Source: Octopus bimaculoides
Taxonomy: Eukaryota
Assembly: GCF_001194135.2 (NCBI RefSeq)
Contig: NC_068981.1
Coordinates: 52,830,207-52,894,206 of the forward strand
Direction of reading: 5' to 3'
DNA length: 64,000 bases
Both the position numbers and the translations under genes were made by a program. Positions 1 to 64,000 of the stretch are shown one piece after another. Each line of letters starts with the position of its first letter. The first letter of the stretch is position 1. The notes beneath the pieces are model-generated. The model was not told the origin of the DNA. It did not search any database and saw only the letters and a program-made list of their open reading frames with translations.

Positions 1-685
1 TTGTGAGGTTTCACTGAGCTTTGTAGAATATTACTAATTTTGGGGGGATGAAGTACTTTTCTGTAGAAGGTAAACAACTGATCAGGGTTAAAGTACTTTG
101 TTGATTTAAAGAGGAACCTAGTCTTTGAGATGCAGTTTTACTAATGTTATAAACATGGAGTTGCCATGACAGATACCTGACTTCAGAATTTTTTGTTCAA
201 ATGGTACTGACATTCTGAATCTGTTATAAATACAGGCTGATATTATTTCTTGTACTGACAAAAGAGTATTAATTTTGTGGGGCTTTTTTCCTTATTTGGA
301 ACTGTATCACATTTTCATAGGAGTTACAAGCCATAATCAAAGCATTTTTGTTGGAAGAACTTTACATGTTATTTTTGAAATGTCTAATGTTATATTTATC
401 CTTTTTGAAATCAGTCATGAAGTGACTCACTACAACAAATAGTGCTGTACAAACCAGTGGGAAAGCCTCTTCTTGGTTGCTGCACCCATTAGAAATAGCA
501 AACAAATCTCATTTAAATCACACACTTTTCTCATTTAAAAGTATAGGACATACTAGGTAATACAGTCTAAGATACACTATGTGAATAGAAGGTAGTACAA
601 CCAAAAGTAGAAAGCCTTTGATCATAGCTTTGTTTGGCCTTAGTTGATCTGAAGTTAAATCATAATTGATAACATAACATTGTGC

Positions 686-14040: not shown

Positions 14041-16033
14041 AAAACAATAGTTAAGTTAGTATTAACATATGTAAGATAAGGAATATAAAAAATCCAATTA
14101 GAAATGAAGCAGTGAGAAAAGAATTCTTAACTCAATAACTAATTACTATTTTAATAATTATACCGTGCACAAGAGATAATTCTAAGTATGTTTTGGTCTA
14201 ATAATAGCAGTCATTGCACTAATGTTATATTTTCCTGACTGTGTAAAGCATTTATTAGATTTCTTGTGCTCACTGTATTAAATGTGTTAAAGTTAAGTGA
14301 ATATCTTTCATGTAAAATGCAGTAAAAAGTCACCTTGAAATAATCAAACAGTAAAAAAAAAAATAATGTTAGTGATTAGTAATATTTCAGTTATTTCACT
14401 AAGTATGGGAGGCATTACAGACATGCTTTGGTTTTAATATGATCTATCCAGTAAAACATAGATTAACTAAAGTAATATTGAAAAAATTACTAAGTATGAG
14501 ATTGTTCAGTTGGTTGGTATAAACAAGAAAATTGAATTGTTTTGAGGATAATTTACTCAGAATTGCTATCCTCATATATAGAATTATAAAATGTTACAAA
14601 CTGGAATTATATTATCCAAGTTACAAAGTGTGTGGTTTTGTAAAAATTATTTAAATTTACAAGTTGGACATTGTGTTAAATTACAAAGTGTCTTCCCCTA
14701 AAATTGTATTAGTCGTATTGTAAGTAATTAGAGTATTTGCCTCAAGCTCATAAGGTTGTGAGATTGATTCCCAGTGGTGTAATGTGTCCCCAAGGACACT
14801 TTATTTCACATTATTCCAGTCCACTCAACTGGCAAAAATAAGTCGTACCGATAATTAAAGGGCCAGCCTTGTCACATTTTGTGTCACACGGAATTTCTCT
14901 GAGAACTACATTCAGGTTACATATGTCTGTTGAGTGCTCAACCACTTGCACGTTAATTTCATGAGCAAGCCATTCCATTGATTGGATTAAGTGGAACCCT
15001 CATCATCATAATCAACAGAGTGTCAGTTATTAGTTGTATTTTAATTATAGTTAGAGATAATGTTTGTAGAAGGTGTGAAATTATTGAAAATTGAATTTAT
15101 ATTGTGCTTTGAGTGAAAAAATGTCAGTTGTAATATGCAGAAATAGGTCAAGTTGTTTTTAAAATAAATTTCTCTAAAAGTACTATATTTATAAATATTT
15201 GGTGCCAAATGCATTCTTTCAAGGCATAATAAAAATGAGCTGGTTGGTTTATGAGCACTATAAAACTGAATGTTTCATTTGCTTACAGTGCCAAGTTACT
15301 TTAAACTGATACTCTTATCAAAAGTGAAAGATAACTCTCACCTGGTTAGAAAGCTAATATTAGCTCTATTACATCTTTACTATATTAAACGCTTCACCAA
15401 GATAATATATAAAGTCAGTGATCAAATTAAATTTATTCTTTTTTTTTTTCCAATGGCCCAAGCAAGTGTCTGCAGGTGTGTGGGTTTTACTCATAAGAAA
15501 TGAATGATTGGTTGTTTAAATGACCTATTTCCTATACACACGACAATTATTTCTTCTAAGTAGGAAAATATATGACTAGTATTTATTTCACTTAGTCTAC
15601 TGACGCAATAGTCAGGATTTAAACCCAAAAACATGAAGTATCAAACAAGATAATGTAAAGTTAGTCAACATTTCTGCCATATATATTATCCCGAACACTT
15701 ACTACAATAAATACTATTCTTACCAGCCTATTGTATTCAGTTTTCTTAGCAGTTAAATATGTTCCATTGTTTAATGAAATGATTAAATTATTTCAAACTT
15801 ACTCTCAAAAAAGGTCTGTTAAACCAGCTTTCTAAACCTATAAAATAAATTTAGTTACATAAATTTCAACAAAGGTGGTTGCCCAGTTATATTTTGTTCT
15901 AATAATCAAAATACTTAGTTATAATAAAAAACAGTTGATTAGATTATAATTTAACATAATTGTTCCTAAATTGAATTCTATAAAGTATTCATGTTTATTG
16001 TCATAATGTAATTATAATAATTATGTTTTCTAG

Positions 16034-16155: not shown

Positions 16156-16355
16156 GTAAAGATACTTTTGAAATTCATAACTATTTTTTGTTTTCTACAA
16201 TTAATTCTAAATAATACCACTAAATAATATTTTTTACTAGACATAAAACATTTATTTGAAATGGGAAGTATGTTGTTGATTAACTTCACTCCTGTATTAT
16301 TGATGTTCTGATCTTGATTCCAAAAGGATGATAGGCAAAAATCACTCCATGGATT

Positions 16356-16930
16356 CATCATCATCATCGTTTAATGTCCGCTTTCCATGCTAGCATGGGT
16401 TGGACGATTTGACTGAGGACTGGTGAACCAGATGGCTACACCAGGCTCCAATCTGATTTGGCAGAGTTTCTACAGCTGGATGCCCTTCCTAACGCCAACC
16501 ACTCCGAGAGTGTAGTAGGTGCTTTTTACGTGCCACCGGCACGAAGGCCAGTCAGGAGGTACTGGCAATCGCCACGCTCGAAATGGTGTATTTTACGTGC
16601 CAATTGCACAGGAGCCAGTCCAGTGGTACTGGCAACGAACTCGCTTGAATGTCTTTTCACGTGCCCAAGTGCTAGGAAGGCGATGTTGGTAATGATCACG
16701 CTCAAATGGTGCTATTTATGTGCCACCGGCACGGAAGCCAGACAGCTGGTGCTCTGGCAACGATCATGCTCGGATGGTTCTCTTAGTGATTTACTGGTAC
16801 GGTGCCATTACGATTTCGCTTTCGCTTGCTCCAACAGGTCTTCGCAAGCCAAGTTTAGTGTTCAATGAAGAGATGTTGGCATGGGTGCCAGTCTACAAAT
16901 TTAGTTCGATTACGATTGCCTGAACAGGTC
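16356..16930 (-). mobile_element. (GAT)n-tailed SINE/RTE-tail repeat copy
   Basis: Starts with (CAT)n-cgtttaatgtccgctttccatgctagcatgggttggacg. About 90% similar to the copies at 19978, 20398 and 26591. Confidence 0.8.
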
Positions 16931-19891: not shown

Positions 19892-19977
<86 letters not shown>

Positions 19978-19979
<2 letters not shown>

Positions 19980-20321
19980 TCATCATCATCGTTGAACATC
20001 CGCTTTCCATGCTAGCATGGGTTGGACGATTTGACTGAGGACTGGTGAACCAGGTGGTTACACCAGGCTCCAATCTGATTTGGCAGAGTTTCTACAGCTG
20101 GATGCCCTTCCTAACGCCAACCACTCAGAGAGTGTAGTGGGTACTTTTATGTGTCACCGGCACAAAGGCCAGTCAGGAGGTACTGGCAACGTCCATGCTC
20201 AAAATGGTGTCTTTTACGTGCCACCTACACGGGAGCCAGTCCAGCGGCACTGGCAACGATCTCGCTCGAATGTCCTTACACGTGCCACCGGCACAAGTGC
20301 CAGAGCACCGGTGCCATCATG
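19978..20321 (-). mobile_element. (GAT)n-tailed SINE/RTE-tail repeat, left arm of an inverted pair
   Basis: Same family as 16356; ends at the 76-N gap. Confidence 0.8.
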
Positions 20322-20397
20322 NNNNNNNNNNNNNNNNNNNNNNNNNNNNNNNNNNNNNNNNNNNNNNNNNNNNNNNNNNNNNNNNNNNNNNNNNNNN

Positions 20398-20629
20398 CAC
20401 ATAAAAGACACCATTTCGAGCGTGGCCATTGCCAGTATCGCCTGACTGGCCTTTGTGCAGGTGACACGTAAAAGCACCTACTACACTCTCTGAGTGGTTG
20501 GCGTTAGGAAGGGCATCCAGCTGTAGAAACTCTGCCAAATTTAGATTGGAGCCTGGTGTTGCCATCCGGTTTCACCAGTCCTCAGTCAAGTCGTCCAACC
20601 CATGCTAGCATGGAAAGCGGACGTTAAAC

Positions 20630-20665
<36 letters not shown>
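20398..20665 (+). mobile_element. (GAT)n-tailed SINE/RTE-tail repeat, right arm of an inverted pair
   Basis: Reverse complement of the 19978 copy at roughly 90% identity; long (GAT)n tail. Confidence 0.8.
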
Positions 20666-22404: not shown

Positions 22405-24059
22405 GTAATTGCTTTACATTGAAAATTTCTAAATATGTATTATTTCTCATTAATCATTGTATTCATTATTATTTTTATGTCCTTATTTCTTTTAGTGACA
22501 AATTATTTGCTTTTGTTTCATTAAAATTTTGATTTTATTACAGCCAATGTTGATTACATTTTAATGTAAATACTTATTATGAACCAATAACTAACATCTG
22601 AAATAAAAATTTTCTGAAACATTCTATGATTGCATACAATAATTTGCGATTGAAGAAACACTAAGCCCACTAATTAGAATTGAAGTACATGTCTTTCACT
22701 TACAAACACACTTGTATATTATACATATTTTTTCTTATTTTATCAGCCTTTAAATAAGCTGATAATGTTTAATGCACTTCCAATATATGGTGTTTGAAGC
22801 ACTATATGTAGGCCCACAAGCATGTTTTTTTAAAATATTTTTTTTATATGTGTATGTGTGTTGCTTAACATAAATCCAGTGTATGGTTTTCAAAACCATT
22901 ATATTATGCAAATGTGTCTATATATGTTTCTGTTCTTAGAGTTATCATATTTGCTGGCACATAAGATGTACCGTTATTTTACAAGTTTATTTTGTGGGAA
23001 AAATATTTAATGTTTCATCATACACTTATTGAAAGATATTTTGAAGTGATCTTGTAGGGGAAGATATATGATTCTGTGCATGTTAACACGATGCTGTCAC
23101 AGTATACTGGAATACAGTATGAAAGTATAAATTTATAAATAAACTACTGGATGTACTGTTTGATCTTTCTGATCAGTGGTAGAGTTGTTTATATTTTAGT
23201 TGAGAGAGTTGCTATTCAGATAGTAAAACGTGTATTTTTGGCTATGGTGTTTTGTGTAACTGCAATCAGCTATCAGTGTGGTGCATAACTACTATAGTTT
23301 TGTTGACATCCACTTTCTGCAAATAGCTGACAGGCAGATGAAAGTTTAAAATTCTTTTCATCTTTCTAGGAGAATTTTCATTTAGATAATAAAAACTGTT
23401 TCTTAAACATTACATTGTCATTAAATGATATATGACACATATCGAGTGTAGGCTATGCATGCTGAAGAAGGAGGAATAATGAGACGATGTGACCTCTCCC
23501 CCATAAGTGCTGATGAACCATAAGTAATTATTATTTGGAACATTTTGTGGTAATTTTTACACATTTTGAAACAATGAATTAAAGGAAAGAAAACAAAAAT
23601 CTCTTTATTGCAATTTAAAACAATTGCCAACTAGTATTTCCCACCTGTGAACAATTTCAACAGTTTTAGCATGAATATATAGATTAAAGATGTTTATTTT
23701 ACTGTCATATAAGCTGTGAATCATTCACATATGACCATCTCATGCTGAATAATGCATCACGTTTATTTACATTTTATGCGAACAATTGCAGAATTACAAG
23801 TGTTTTGTGTAACATTTGTTTTATTTTTTAGCTTTTTAGATGGTCATTGAGACTGTAATAGGAGTAACAGAATGGGGCTAATACAGTTAATTTCCTGTGC
23901 TGTTTGTTATACTTTTTGTCCCAATGATGTTTTAATCTATTTTCTAGCTTTATATAAATATTTTAACCCAGTCCTAAAGTAGCCTTCATAAATTGACCAT
24001 GCAGGATGCAAAATAAAACATCAAAGACTGAATGGGGATTATTGAATCATTAGTTAAAA

Positions 24060-25385
24060 GATGTAAATGCTGGCCAGAGTACAAGATAGTAGGGAGACAT
24101 CTGACCCTTTTGAAGTCACAAATGGAGTGAAACAGGGGTGTGTTTTAGCTCCTACCCTGTTCTGTCTCATGTTCTCTGCAATGCTGACAGACGCTTTCGG
24201 AGACGCTGATGTGGGTATTGGAATCAGGTACAGATTTGATGGATCAGTTTTCAACCTCAGGAGGCTACGAGCAAAATCCAAAGTTACAACAGACACTATC
24301 AATGACTTCCTGTTTGCTGATGACTGTGCCCTAAACACTGCCTCTGAGGCGGACATGCAACGCAGTACAGACATATTCTCGGAAGCTTGTAACAACTTTG
24401 GTCTCACAATCAGTACCAAGAAGACCGAGGTGATGCACCAACCCGCTCCAGGAAAACTACATGTAGAACCCAACATTTCCATCAACGGGCAAAGATTCAA
24501 TGCGGTTGACAAATTCACCTACCTTGGCAGTACACTTTCCCACAATGTAGTCATTGATGATGAGATCAACACCAGACTCGCCAAAGCAAGTGNNNNNNNN
24601 NNACAACAGACACTATCAATGACTTCCTGTTTGCTGATGACTGTGCCCTAAACACTGCCTCTGAGGCGGACATGCAACGCAGTACAGACATATTCTCGGA
24701 AGCTTGTAACAACTTTGGTCTCACAATCAGTACCAAGAAGACCGAGGTGATGCACCAACCCGCTCCAGGAAAACTACATGTAGAACCCAACATTTCCATC
24801 AACGGGCAAAGATTCAATGCGGTTGACAAATTCNNNNNNNNNNACTACTTGGCATAAGCTGGCAGGAAAGGATACCAGACACAGAAGTCCTCACACATGC
24901 CGGGCTCCCAAGCATCCCTACCATCCTGATGAAAACTCAGCTTCACTGGGCTGGTCATGTAGCCCGCATGCCAGACTACAGAATACCCAAGAAGCTTCTG
25001 TTTGGTGAGCTCCAGCATGGCAAGCACTCCCATGGTGGCCAGAGGAAACGGTTTAAAGACAGTCTAAAGGTATCACTGAAGGCCTTCAACATTGACCCGT
25101 CATCATGGGAGCAGACAGCTTTAGATAGGACCAACTGGCGGGCCGCTGTTCACAACGGTGCTAATATGAAAGTGACAGGAAAGCTGCTGCAGAGAAGCGC
25201 AGGTAGAACAGAAAGAACAATGCTTTGAAGCCCCCGATACCTGCTACCATTCCCTGTCCCTACTGCAGCAGATCTTTCCAAGCGTGGATTGGGCTTATCA
25301 GCCATCTCTGCGCTCACCGATGATGACCTCCTCACCCTCCTCTAGGATGATCAGATGGTCCTCGTCGTTCCGACAGACGAACAAC
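24060..25385 (+). mobile_element. Young 5'-truncated RTE (BovB-like) LINE
   Basis: Open RT frame with NGVKQGCVLAPTLF, GIRYRFDGSVFNLRRL, FLFADDCAL and FTYLGS, followed by HWAGHVARMPDYRIPKKLLFGEL. GC is much higher than the flanks. Confidence 0.9.
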
Positions 25386-25890: not shown

Positions 25891-26590
25891 NNNNNNNNNN
25901 NNNNNNNNNNNNNNNNNNNNNNNNNNNNNNNNNNNNNNNNNNNNNNNNNNNNNNNNNNNNNNNNNNNNNNNNNNNNNNNNNNNNNNNNNNNNNNNNNNNN
26001 NNNNNNNNNNNNNNNNNNNNNNNNNNNNNNNNNNNNNNNNNNNNNNNNNNNNNNNNNNNNNNNNNNNNNNNNNNNNNNNNNNNNNNNNNNNNNNNNNNNN
26101 NNNNNNNNNNNNNNNNNNNNNNNNNNNNNNNNNNNNNNNNNNNNNNNNNNNNNNNNNNNNNNNNNNNNNNNNNNNNNNNNNNNNNNNNNNNNNNNNNNNN
26201 NNNNNNNNNNNNNNNNNNNNNNNNNNNNNNNNNNNNNNNNNNNNNNNNNNNNNNNNNNNNNNNNNNNNNNNNNNNNNNNNNNNNNNNNNNNNNNNNNNNN
26301 NNNNNNNNNNNNNNNNNNNNNNNNNNNNNNNNNNNNNNNNNNNNNNNNNNNNNNNNNNNNNNNNNNNNNNNNNNNNNNNNNNNNNNNNNNNNNNNNNNNN
26401 NNNNNNNNNNNNNNNNNNNNNNNNNNNNNNNNNNNNNNNNNNNNNNNNNNNNNNNNNNNNNNNNNNNNNNNNNNNNNNNNNNNNNNNNNNNNNNNNNNNN
26501 NNNNNNNNNNNNNNNNNNNNNNNNNNNNNNNNNNNNNNNNNNNNNNNNNNNNNNNNNNNNNNNNNNNNNNNNNNNNNNNNNNNNNNNNNN
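25891..26590. other. Assembly gap (700 N); smaller gaps at 20322-20397, 24593-24602 and 24834-24843
   Basis: N runs in the sequence. Confidence 0.99.
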
Positions 26591-26960
26591 TCATAGGATT
26601 TTCGAGCGAGATCGTTGCCAGTGCCCCTGGGCTGGCTGTTGTGTGGGTTACACGTGAAATTTTTCGAGCGAGATCGTTGCCGGTGCCCCTGAACTGGCTC
26701 TTGTGCGGGTGACACATGAAATGCACCATTTTGAGCATGGCCGTTGCCAGTACTACCTGACTGGCCTTCGTGCGGGTGACACGTAAAAGCAGCCACTACA
26801 CTCTCGGAGTGGTTGGCGTTAGGAAGGTCATCCAGCTGTAGAAACTCTGCCAAATCAGATTGGAGCCTGGTGTAGCCATCTGGTTTCACCAGTCCTCAGT
26901 CAAATCGTCCAACCCATGCTAGCATAGAAAGCGGACGTTAAACGATGATGATGATGATGA
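26591..26960 (+). mobile_element. (GAT)n-tailed SINE/RTE-tail repeat copy
   Basis: Same family; the left end is hidden in the 700-N gap. More diverged copies at about 11620-11840, 42543-43260, 46567-46690 and 50040-50285. Confidence 0.8.
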
Positions 26961-34926: not shown

Positions 34927-35124
34927 AATTCATGGAAGGGGGAAAATATTTCTTCAATATTGTGAAGGAAGGTGACACGGTAACATTTGCTACAGAAGAT
35001 GAAACAGAGCGTACATTGTGGGTTCAAGCAATATATCGAGCTACAGGACAGACACACAAACCTGTACCTCCTGTAATGCAAACTAATAAAATTAGCAATA
35101 CTCAGATATCAAGAATGCAAGGAG
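34927..35124 (+). CDS. CADPS: CADPS exon, end of PH ([49 protein letters not shown]...MQG)
   Basis: taacag|AA and GAG|gtaagt; 198 nt, phase 1-1. Contains the LWVQA.YRATGQ.HKPVPP motif. Confidence 0.96.
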
Positions 35125-35612
35125 GTAAGTTATCATACATACATCTATACCTACATACATATACACAACCATGCATTATGCATGCATGTTCTACTATAGT
35201 TTATATTTTCTAAGTAGGGGTAAAAATCAGATGTTTTTTAATGCTTTTTAATATTGATTTTTGTTTTTATTAATAACATAATTGAAAATTACATTTCAAA
35301 TAAATAACTGTGTAATCAGTTTTTACTTTTTGCTATTGCCTTGATTGTTCAACATTTGAAGTATGTGAATGATCATATATTTAAATTTTATTAATCATTC
35401 CCAGACATTTTATATTTGACTGTCTGGGATTGTGAACTTGTGTGTTGCACCTAAGCATTTGAGTTGCTGTCTTTGTTTGTATGTACTCAACCAGATATAA
35501 TCAGGGTTACTCAGCAGCAACAACAATCCTTAACCTATGTGTCAACAGTTAGGAATATTTTGACAATTTTAATTTCACTATTTTTATTTATTATTATAAA
35601 TTTATTTTCTAG

Positions 35613-44507: not shown

Positions 44508-45715
44508 GTAGGGTTTTCTTTATTTTCCTTTATGTGTTCCAGCCTGAAGGCTGTAGCCATGCTGGGGTACTGCCATTTTTAAGGGCTATTAAGAAAGTCT
44601 TTAGACATTGTATGAGCTTGTTATTAAGTTTTTAGCTATTTCACAGAAATTGTGAAAGTGCATGGCTTAATGGTTAATGTTTTCAGCTCACAATTGTAAG
44701 TGCATGTATTTGATTCCCAGTGGCATGTTGTGTCCTTGAGCAAGACACCTTATTTCATATTGCTCCAGTCTACTCAACTTGTAAAAATGAGTTGTACTTG
44801 TAATTCAAAAGGCCAGCCTTGTCACATTCTGTGTCACACTTAATCGCCCTGAGAACTACATTAAAGATACACGTGTCAGTGGAGTGCTCAGCCACTTACA
44901 TATTAATTTTATGAGCAGGCTGTTCTGTTGATTGGGTCAACTGAAACACTTGTCATCATAACTGATGGAGTATCAGTTTTTATTTCACAGAAACATATTT
45001 GTAATGACTAATGCAATATATTTTCTAAATATGAAAAGAATTTGTCTGTTATTTAAGGTAAAAGAAATTTTTTTTATTTTTAAAATTGAAATGTTAAAGG
45101 GATTTTTAAAAAGATTGAAACAGACAGTTTTAAAGTGATTTTACCAGAAAATATATCTTAAATTCTGTCCAACCTATGTGATGGTGATGATTTGTATCTA
45201 TGTGTATACACACGGACACACAGACATGTGTATACAGACACACAGATACAAAAACATCTGCACACACATACACACCAGTTTTCTTTCAGTTTCTATCTAC
45301 CAAATCCAGTTACAAGGTTTTGGTTTACCCAGAACTTTAATAAAAGACACTTACCCAAGGTGCCATGCTGTGGGGATGAACCTGAAATTATATGATTGGA
45401 AAGTAGGCTTTGCAGCCACATAGCCATGCCTACATCTGCTGTTTCTATTATTTACATAATTCTGTAAAATGTGGAGTGGACTTGCAGTCCAGTAATTATA
45501 CTTTGTATTGATCCTAATTAATAACTTATTAATAAACTTATAGCTTTTATTTATATTACTATGTTATTATATATCACATCCTACTCATTTTCCTCCTATT
45601 TTCATTTTGAAAATAAACCCCTTCATCCTACTTTCCAGGTTCTTAGACATAAACTTTTAATTATATTTTAAAAAGTTTTTACTTATTTCATCTAATAATA
45701 CATCTATCTTTACAG

Positions 45716-45733
45716 CAAATGAACGTGCTGCTG
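45716..45733 (+). CDS. CADPS: Candidate 18-nt microexon (ANERAA)
   Basis: ctaat branch-like motif at 45692, tctttacag|CA acceptor, CTG|gtatga donor; phase 1-1, open frame. TGCATG at 45784. Confidence 0.72.
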
Positions 45734-47149
45734 GTATGAAAATGTTCATATATTTGTTGTTTCTGTTTTGTGTTTAGTTTCAGTGCATGTTATTGTGATG
45801 CAGTTGTCTTTAAAATTAGAATTAAGTTGATGTCCGTGTTGTTGCTTTATATATATTTTGAAAAAAAAAGAATAAAGTTATTGTAATTTGTGGTTCATCA
45901 TCATCATCATCATTGTTTAATTTCCGCCCTCCTTGCTAGCATAGATGGGATAGTATTACAATTAATTATATCTATTATGTTTCTTAAATTCATTTATGTA
46001 ATCTTTTAATTCTTTTACTTATATCTAACAATTATAGTTATATATATATATTTAGATTCTAATTTCTGCTTGTTTAATTTGGGAACAATTATTTTCCTGT
46101 TGTAATCTATGTATTAGTTAAACTTAATATCTGTATCAACTTTATTTATCCATCTTCCTTTATTTAGATAAATGAAAACAAAAAACTGCATGAAAAGTTT
46201 ATGAAGATTGATAGATCTTATAATTTTATACTAGTTGTTTAATAATGACAAATATATATAAAACACACTAGTAAATGTAATTGGTTTCAAAATATCACTT
46301 TTCTATGATGATGGTTGTCATTTAAAACTTATGACTTAACCTTCCTGTTGACATGGAAATGTTGATGTAAAATGATGTCATTAGAACTACCAGATACATT
46401 TTAGTATTTCCTTATAACTTGTATTCAATTTAGATAACAATGGTGTCATGCTGGTGTTGAAAGAGTTGATGTAGGATGATAGTATATTATCCTTGATTAT
46501 TGTGTTAGACTTTCAATCTTTTCAGCGAGGTATCCTGATGCCAACTTTCACCTGTTTTCAAACATGAAACAGGTGAGATTTGGCATCAGGAAGTGCACCC
46601 AGTTGTAATAAACTCTGCCCCAACATAGTTTCATCAACCCATGCAAGCATGGAAAAGTAGGCATTAAGATGATGATGATGGATGATGATGTATGTATATA
46701 TGTATGTATTTGTGTTGTGATTTATCTGCATATAATCATTCTGTGTTTCTCTCCTGGTATGTGGCCTTTCTTGGATGAGAAGACTTGCTTTTGAATGTGT
46801 AATACTACCCCAGAATCTACAGATAAGATTATCTCTAGACCCTCTACTACTAAGAACATCAACAGCCTGCAAGTTTTACACATATTTCACTATTTAATGG
46901 GCAGTTTGATTTTTCTTGAATTGCAGGCTGTACTTCCTAGTTATAGAAGTACCATTTACTTCTATTCAGTGCAAGATGAATCTTAGCCGGTATACCATCA
47001 GCACCTGGTGTGTTTTTCTGATTTGACCTATTTGATGACAGTTTTGACTTCCTCTATATTAGGATTTTTACCCATTTCTTCTATATTATAGTGCTGCAGT
47101 AGATCTTTTATGACATTCTCATATGTTATGGATAGATTGTAGAAAAGAA

Positions 47150-53329: not shown

Positions 53330-53362
53330 CTGCTGCCGCTGCTGCAGGGCTTGTTTCAGGTG
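53330..53362 (+). CDS. CADPS: Candidate 33-nt microexon (AAAAAGLVSG)
   Basis: tcccccttttttactccag|CT acceptor and GTG|gtaggt donor; phase 1-1, open frame, GC-rich relative to flanks. TGCATG at 53411 and 53570. Confidence 0.7.

Positions 53363-63932: not shown

Positions 63933-64000
<68 letters not shown>

Follow-up and report, generated by a model that had tools for sequence, protein, structure and literature searches.

CAPS/CADPS is a priming factor for dense-core and synaptic vesicles, and in vertebrates the junction that follows its exon ending in ...EYAKIE is a splicing hotspot. CAPS1 isoforms read either ...SEYAKIE-ENQKDA-ENVGRL(I/V)TPAKKLED... or, when the six residues are skipped, ...SEYAKIE-ENVGRL.... 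Of the 120 CAPS1 sequences listed, 62 contain ENQKD[AT] and 37 lack it; the cassette e16a occurs together with QNQKDA in eight and alone in a further eight. At least four cassettes occur between ...AKIE and NVGRL in CAPS1 (e.g. in P0235, P0243, and P0395), namely e16a (69 nt), (E/Q)NQKDA (18 nt), GP[LVG]S[CS]TT (21 nt), and ASSVTLHFNSSSCTA (45 nt). The (E/Q)NQKDA exon lies downstream of the exon ending ...EYAKIE (mouse exon 16) and upstream of the one starting NVGRLITPAKKLED. These isoforms confirm what an earlier reading of our locus from its letters alone (the sequence-only reading) had said of vertebrate CAPS1, i.e. a six-residue ENQKDA segment and other alternative exons at the AKIE junction. 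CAPS1 also has microexons elsewhere in the protein, which encode SGLKD after ..ISQF and GKE or PHVDKGE after ..EEHHAE.

The position of this junction within the protein can be read from structural and domain data. PDB 6A68, the SNARE-binding DAMH domain of CAPS1, starts at ENVGRL, so that the crystallised domain has its N-terminal edge at this junction. In the CAPS1 sequence P0236 the insert comprises residues 827-832, ∼25 residues into the Pfam MUN model. The sequence-only reading had placed the insert in a 'linker entering the MUN region'. By both measures, entering MUN is a fair description; the linker part is an inference.

A published cassette at the junction itself is mouse Cadps e16a (69 nt, 23 residues, GKKREMYEHPVFCLASQVMDLTI), which lies directly after ...EYAKIE; it is enriched in nociceptors, couples CAPS1 to CaV2.2, and has a nociceptor-specific role (PMC13232204). 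Because e16a gives CAPS1 a nociceptor-specific function, insertions at the AKIE junction can carry physiological weight. Regulated microexons are also found in the MUN-domain genes of worm, fly, and mouse (unc-13, unc-31/Cadps, F54G2.1, and a 9-nt GLK exon in mouse Cadps) (PMC12287369). Like the candidate described below, these are tiny in-frame cassettes in vesicle-priming proteins, and they are regulated between neuron types. Unlike it, they sit elsewhere in their proteins; the worm regulators are EXC-7/ELAV and MBL-1/MBNL, and cephalopods fall outside the coverage of that work (PMC12287369).

A third relevant description is that of 'type I convergence', in which differing small neural exons occupy the equivalent coding position of bilaterian orthologues; the underlying data set includes Octopus bimaculoides (bioRxiv 10.64898/2026.09.05.749416). 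This is a scenario like the one proposed by the sequence-only reading, which had suggested an ancient or convergent microexon hotspot; the main text of that study makes no mention of CADPS (10.64898/2026.09.05.749416). Our literature search found nothing CAPS-specific on an octopus microexon or its peptide. Microexons in MUN-domain priming factors and a vertebrate splicing hotspot at this junction are thus known, and the candidate cephalopod CAPS microexon reported here appears to be new.

The octopus locus and its 18-nt segment

The window, by which we mean the whole 64-kb stretch of O. bimaculoides DNA that was analysed, is AT-rich (GC ∼0.32) and contains a collinear series of CAPS exons (Table 1). 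The spliced window model matches the Pfam families C2_CAPS (PF25341, E=2.8e-51) and PH (PF00169, E=2.1e-12), identifying the host gene as CAPS/CADPS. Most of the MUN region of this gene lies outside the window. The exon ending ...EYAKIE is constitutive. In a protein-level search, single-exon ORFs covering this exon and continuing past its donor were present in >150 animal genomes, which means that the position of the phase-1 intron following AKIE is deeply conserved. Up to base 64000 we found no match to the next constitutive exon (KKLED..LAEL..QQNEEHHAE). The 3′ junction partner hence lies beyond the window, and the intron is at least 19.5 kb long.

The segment begins 1,208 nt beyond the AKIE exon, in the context ...tctaataatacatctatctttacAG / CAAATGAACGTGCTGCTG / GTATGAaaatg. 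Together with the lone G left by the upstream exon it reads G-CA AAT GAA CGT GCT GCT G, that is, A N E R A A, without a stop and ending in phase 1. Its length is a multiple of three, and the frame handed on by the AKIE exon stays open through it; it lies on the sense strand inside the CAPS intron, between 3′ and 5′ splice sites that look functional. Since the AKIE exon and the segment both end in G, the split codon downstream is the same with or without inclusion. Direct reading of the letters thus bears out the earlier claim of phase 1-1 and an open frame. The CAG acceptor, branch-like motif, and GTATGA donor claimed with it are likewise present; the pyrimidine tract is moderate and the donor sub-consensus. 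The segment is unique sequence outside any repeat, the nearest dispersed repeat starting at 45895. An 18-nt exon placed 1.2 kb inside so long an intron is easy for gene predictors to miss.

Table 1. Positions of the features of the octopus window and of the short candidates in other invertebrate introns
Feature	Position	Strand	Basis
13 collinear CAPS/CADPS exons	∼10061 to 44507	+	tblastn with CAPS fragments
Constitutive CAPS exon, 41 residues ...EYAKIE plus lone G of split codon	44384..44507	+	acceptor ttttAG, donor GTAGGG, ends phase 1
Branch-point-like CTAAT, 20 nt before acceptor, AG-free interval	45692..45696	+	consensus match only
Pyrimidine tract of moderate strength with CAG acceptor, acatctatctttacAG, 12/20 pyrimidines, score 1.9	45700..45715	+	crude splice score
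Candidate microexon CAAATGAACGTGCTGCTG, 18 nt, phase 1-1, peptide ANERAA inserted after ...AKIE	45716..45733	+	read from sequence
Sub-consensus donor GTATGA, score 2.0, weak end of the gene's donors	45734..45739	+	crude splice score
GU/U-rich tract atatttgttgtttctgttttgtgttt downstream of donor, candidate intronic enhancer	45750..45775	+	sequence
UGCAUG (Rbfox-type) hexamer, +51..+56 from donor	45784..45789	+	motif scan
AKHAGKS, 21 nt	L006:11945-11965, L007:11578-11598		crude splice rank
AKHGKQG, 21 nt	L014:12024-12044		crude splice rank
AAQSGKQ, 21 nt, and AVGRRRSQ, 24 nt	L013:8259-8279 and 14252-14275		crude splice rank
ARAVKQQGQ, 27 nt	L012:10260-10286, L016:357-383		crude splice rank and conservation pair
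ARNVNK, 18 nt	L011:11996-12013		crude splice rank
ARSGKRQEST, 30 nt	L015:10516-10545		crude splice rank
VRNGKR, 18 nt	L017:13729-13746		crude splice rank

The evidence that carries our interpretation comes from a distant relative, L004. Its AKIE exon is 89% identical to that of the window at the DNA level and differs in one residue, and the introns that follow cannot be aligned by blastn or tblastx. At L004:15525-15542, 5,408 nt inside the equivalent intron, stands ttttctttgttttccAG / CTGCTGAACGCGCGGCGG / GTACGA, which reads AAERAA. This counterpart has the same length (18 nt), phase, and intron as the window segment, and its acceptor (ttttctttgttttccAG) is strong. Twelve of the 18 bases are identical. 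Four of the six that differ are four-fold-degenerate third positions (GCA/GCT, CGT/CGC, GCT/GCG, and GCT/GCG), and the other two fall in a single codon, AAT to GCT, which changes N to A; first and second codon positions are kept at 10 of 12 sites. Concentration of the differences at third positions indicates that constraint acts on the peptide and not on an RNA motif. Retention of a peptide amid saturated synonymous sites and flanks is expected of a translated exon, and not of a pseudo-exon that arose by chance. Judged from this comparison, the pattern shows purifying selection acting on the predicted peptide between two deeply diverged genomes.

The conserved coding capacity is documented in this one informative comparator. 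In the closer relatives L001-L003 the intron is ∼82% identical, and the alignment ends at window position 44830, inside a dispersed repeat and short of the segment. When the complete window intron was compared with L004, at the nucleotide level and in six frames, no other conserved block came to light. A degenerate DNA pattern of the two exons gave three matches among metagenome contigs, none of them cephalopod-like. The matches listed by the protein-database searches were single-exon genomic ORFs, short fragments, or vertebrate proteins, with no cephalopod transcript or spliced protein among them.

Taken together, these comparisons mean that the segment is probably a true cassette microexon, lying within the large intron after the ...EYAKIE exon. 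We infer that it is spliced into the mRNA. Inclusion would add exactly six residues, ANERAA, and leave the rest of the protein unaltered. The insert would come just before the first helix of the SNARE-binding DAMH/MUN module, on its N-terminal side, where it could lengthen or stiffen the connection from the C2-PH-central part of the protein to the SNARE-binding helical domain.

The window contains several further features. Among in-frame candidates of the intron after AKIE, the highest crude splice score belongs to cccccttttttactccAG / CTGCTGCCGCTGCTGCAGGGCTTGTTTCAGGTG / GTAGGT at 53330-53362, which reads AAAAAAGLVSG; no counterpart of it was found in L004, whose contig may stop short of that position. 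A dispersed short repeat starting (CAT)n lies at 45895-45950, 160 nt downstream of the candidate microexon, and has copies at 16355-16404, 19976-20026, 20594-20649 (−), and 26908-26960 (−). A second repeat spans 44709-44830, with another copy at 14764-14878; the homology with L001-L003 breaks off there. Farther upstream, an overlapping (U)GCAUG cluster, catgcattatgcatgcatg, occupies 35172-35192, ∼45-65 nt downstream of the donor of the exon at ∼34927-35126 (...ISRMQG). The vertebrate junction homologous to this donor (..ISQF/ADRAQ) carries the 9-nt GLK microexon; the window intron there is 480 nt long. Reverse-transcriptase-like ORFs are found in CAPS introns at 24067-25000 and 20035-20470, interrupted by N runs (assembly gaps). 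A 38-residue stretch, QLWSHNQYQEDRGD..., appears twice, at 24393 and 24710, on either side of a gap, and may be an assembly duplication.

Short candidates in other lineages and the origin of the probable exon

The described exon most like the octopus segment is the vertebrate CADPS (E/Q)NQKDA exon. The two belong to the same gene family and the same intron, share phase 1-1 and a length of 18 nt, and would each provide a clean six-residue insert at the DAMH/MUN edge with the downstream split codon intact. The bird locus L005 illustrates the vertebrate arrangement: the AKIE exon ends at 22594 and is followed by e16a at 24994-25062 and by the microexon at 25931-25948. That microexon, AGAATCAAAAGGACGCAG, is 18 nt long and of phase 1-1, has the donor GTGAAC, and ranks first by our crude splice score. 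The intron position, which the earlier reading had proposed comparing with vertebrates, therefore agrees between bird and octopus.

There are also differences. ENQKDA and ANERAA have the N and the final A in common, and L004 has A in place of that N. The vertebrate intron additionally carries e16a and other cassettes, for which we found no counterpart in the window intron. Like the octopus segment, e16a is a cassette in the equivalent intron directly after ...EYAKIE, but it is four times as long and has an unrelated sequence. Searches with e16a (tblastn) matched the bird locus and gave no hit to the window or to any invertebrate locus.

We examined the intron after AKIE in nine further invertebrate contigs. 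Seven of them also contain the next exon (..KKLED.IHLAELCIEVLQQNEEHHAE), which allowed their introns to be scanned in full. In all nine, a short (18-30 nt) in-frame phase-1 segment bounded by AG and GT stands at rank 1 or 2 by crude splice score (Table 1). The candidate peptides mostly begin with alanine and are rich in K, R, Q, and G. A top-two candidate starts with C, which gives alanine, at 9 of 12 loci, vs 3 of 12 on the reverse-complement control; C is the first base in 18% of all candidates. Among the candidates, which come from seven lineages, conservation supports only ARAVKQQGQ. Between L012 and L016 this segment differs at two bases, both synonymous, and is flanked by a conserved block with UGCAUG; the first ∼100 nt of the intron cannot be aligned. 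Unsupervised clustering of AG...GT candidates by peptide similarity at eight loci performed no better on the forward strand than on the reverse-complement control, and we dropped it. The candidates accordingly rest on splice rank, the alanine start, and the single conserved pair. In arthropod transcripts the AKIE junction has no insert.

These short phase-1 candidates, together with the several vertebrate cassettes, fit the sequence-only reading's proposal of a microexon hotspot at the AKIE junction. Our own reading is that the intron after AKIE is such a hotspot in many lineages. Two histories of the octopus exon then come into question. We give about an even chance to the first, in which the exon is real and independent of the vertebrate ENQKDA exon, having arisen by recurrent ('type I convergent') origin at the equivalent protein position. 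The similarity of the peptides is slight: NERAA scores 12 against NQKDA (P=0.04 by shuffling), and AERAA, the version in L004, scores 4, which is not significant. The candidates of the other invertebrates vary in sequence and, across seven lineages, in length (18-30 nt), and the arthropod transcripts without an insert point the same way. Recurrence is moreover reported to be common for neural exons (10.64898/2026.09.05.749416). Against an independent origin, the vertebrate and cephalopod exons agree in intron, phase, and 18-nt length, and nearly every lineage has a short phase-1 candidate, which one old origin with rapid sequence turnover would explain too.

The second history, that of a single ancestral bilaterian microexon slot after ...AKIE at the MUN/DAMH entrance, we advance tentatively. 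Both length (18-30 nt) and peptide would have drifted by lineage within such a slot. Vertebrates would then have xNQKDA in the slot and cephalopods A[NA]ERAA, and the other lophotrochozoan-like genomes would carry peptides of the type A[KR]x..GK[QS].

Likely regulation and competing readings of the segment

Whichever its origin, the sequence around the segment offers some hints as to regulation. A GU/U-rich tract lies 20-60 nt downstream of the donor in both the window and L004. The 10-mer TATTTGTTGT is common to the two (+17..27 in the window, +27..36 in L004), a marginal match given a chance expectation of ∼0.1 in AT-rich DNA. The Rbfox-type hexamer downstream of the octopus donor recurs after ARAVKQQGQ (at +53 in L012 and +38 in L016) and at +101 in L014. 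TGCATG is absent within 300 nt downstream in L004 and absent in bird, which makes the hexamer a lead and not a finding; GCATG is expected by chance ∼0.3 times per 300 nt. Upstream, no TGC occurs within 60 nt of the segment in the window or L004, and the bird exon has one at −21. The SRRM4/eMIC signature is thus lacking from the octopus segment, which lowers the case for membership of that class only. Neural regulation by factors other than SRRM4/eMIC is possible. The flanking intron is not conserved, unlike that of typical vertebrate neural microexons.

Weak donors are usual among regulated exons, and the donor falls short of the consensus in the window (GTATGA) as well as in L004 (GTACGA), the two cephalopod-type genomes. 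Considering the vertebrate CAPS1 cassettes, the microexons of other MUN-domain genes, this weak donor, the GU-rich tract, and UGCAUG, we think that the segment is most likely an alternative, neuron-enriched, enhancer-dependent cassette. Used alternatively and enriched in neurons, its insert would be expected to tune vesicle priming instead of acting as an on/off switch.

A real exon could also be constitutive in this lineage and present in essentially all CAPS mRNAs, which we consider unlikely. In favour of constitutive use, the splice sites are about equal to those of the weaker constitutive exons: the gene's 12 constitutive exons in the window score 0.8-3.6 for the acceptor and 1.5-6.7 for the donor, and the segment falls inside both ranges. 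On the other side stand the vertebrate counterpart, annotated as both included and skipped, the sub-consensus donor of both cephalopod-type genomes, and the cell-type regulation reported for MUN-gene microexons (PMC12287369).

A more basic doubt about the cassette reading is that any long AT-rich intron harbours dozens of open 18-mers flanked by AG and GT that the spliceosome ignores, and the segment might be one of these chance pseudo-exons. The window intron contains 57 AG-18-GT segments, of which 41 are open. Ranked by crude splice signals among the 423 in-frame AG...GT candidates of 6-33 nt in this intron, the segment comes eighth, behind seven others. The splice signals alone make a weak case for it as an exon. 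It is the conserved counterpart in L004 that raises the segment above chance. AAERAA is found there at equal length and phase and between the same splice dinucleotides, with mostly synonymous differences, in introns that are otherwise saturated. Among 662 open AG-18-GT segments from the pooled loci, both strands included, only the window and L004 segments score ≥20 against ANERAA, the next best scoring 12. Just 2 of 24,778 pentapeptides of L004 match NERAA equally well. Markov shuffles yielded an open AG-18-GT segment scoring ≥20 in 0 of 5000 trials for the L004 intron and 0 of 2000 for the window intron. Within L004 the counterpart ranks second of 162 candidates of 6-33 nt by crude splice signals, and first if only those of 15-30 nt are considered. 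In light of this match we judge a chance pseudo-exon to be very unlikely.

Least probable of all, and by our estimate highly improbable, is a non-coding role for the conserved 18-mer as a regulatory element of the intron and not an exon, whether it silences or enhances splicing or binds a protein. Its intronic location would suit such a role, as would the YGCY/UGC-type motifs that it contains (in the window GTGCTGCTG and in L004 CTGCTG), a kind that MBNL-type factors bind. Against it, only 12 of 18 nucleotides are identical, four of the six third positions have changed but only two of the 12 first and second positions, and AG and GT stand exactly 18 nt apart in both genomes.

What a cephalopod CAPS microexon may mean

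A probable cassette microexon after AKIE would sit at a consequential point of the protein, as this junction is the doorway to the SNARE-binding domain of CAPS. Were the slot ancestral, it would be among the very few microexons common to protostomes and vertebrates, and it would point to a conserved requirement for adjusting the geometry of the membrane-binding half of CAPS relative to the SNARE-binding half. Cephalopods are the other lineage with large, complex brains. A peptide-conserved cephalopod microexon at this position would therefore provide a clean test of whether neural microexon slots date back to the bilaterian ancestor or are invented anew wherever the architecture of the protein permits.
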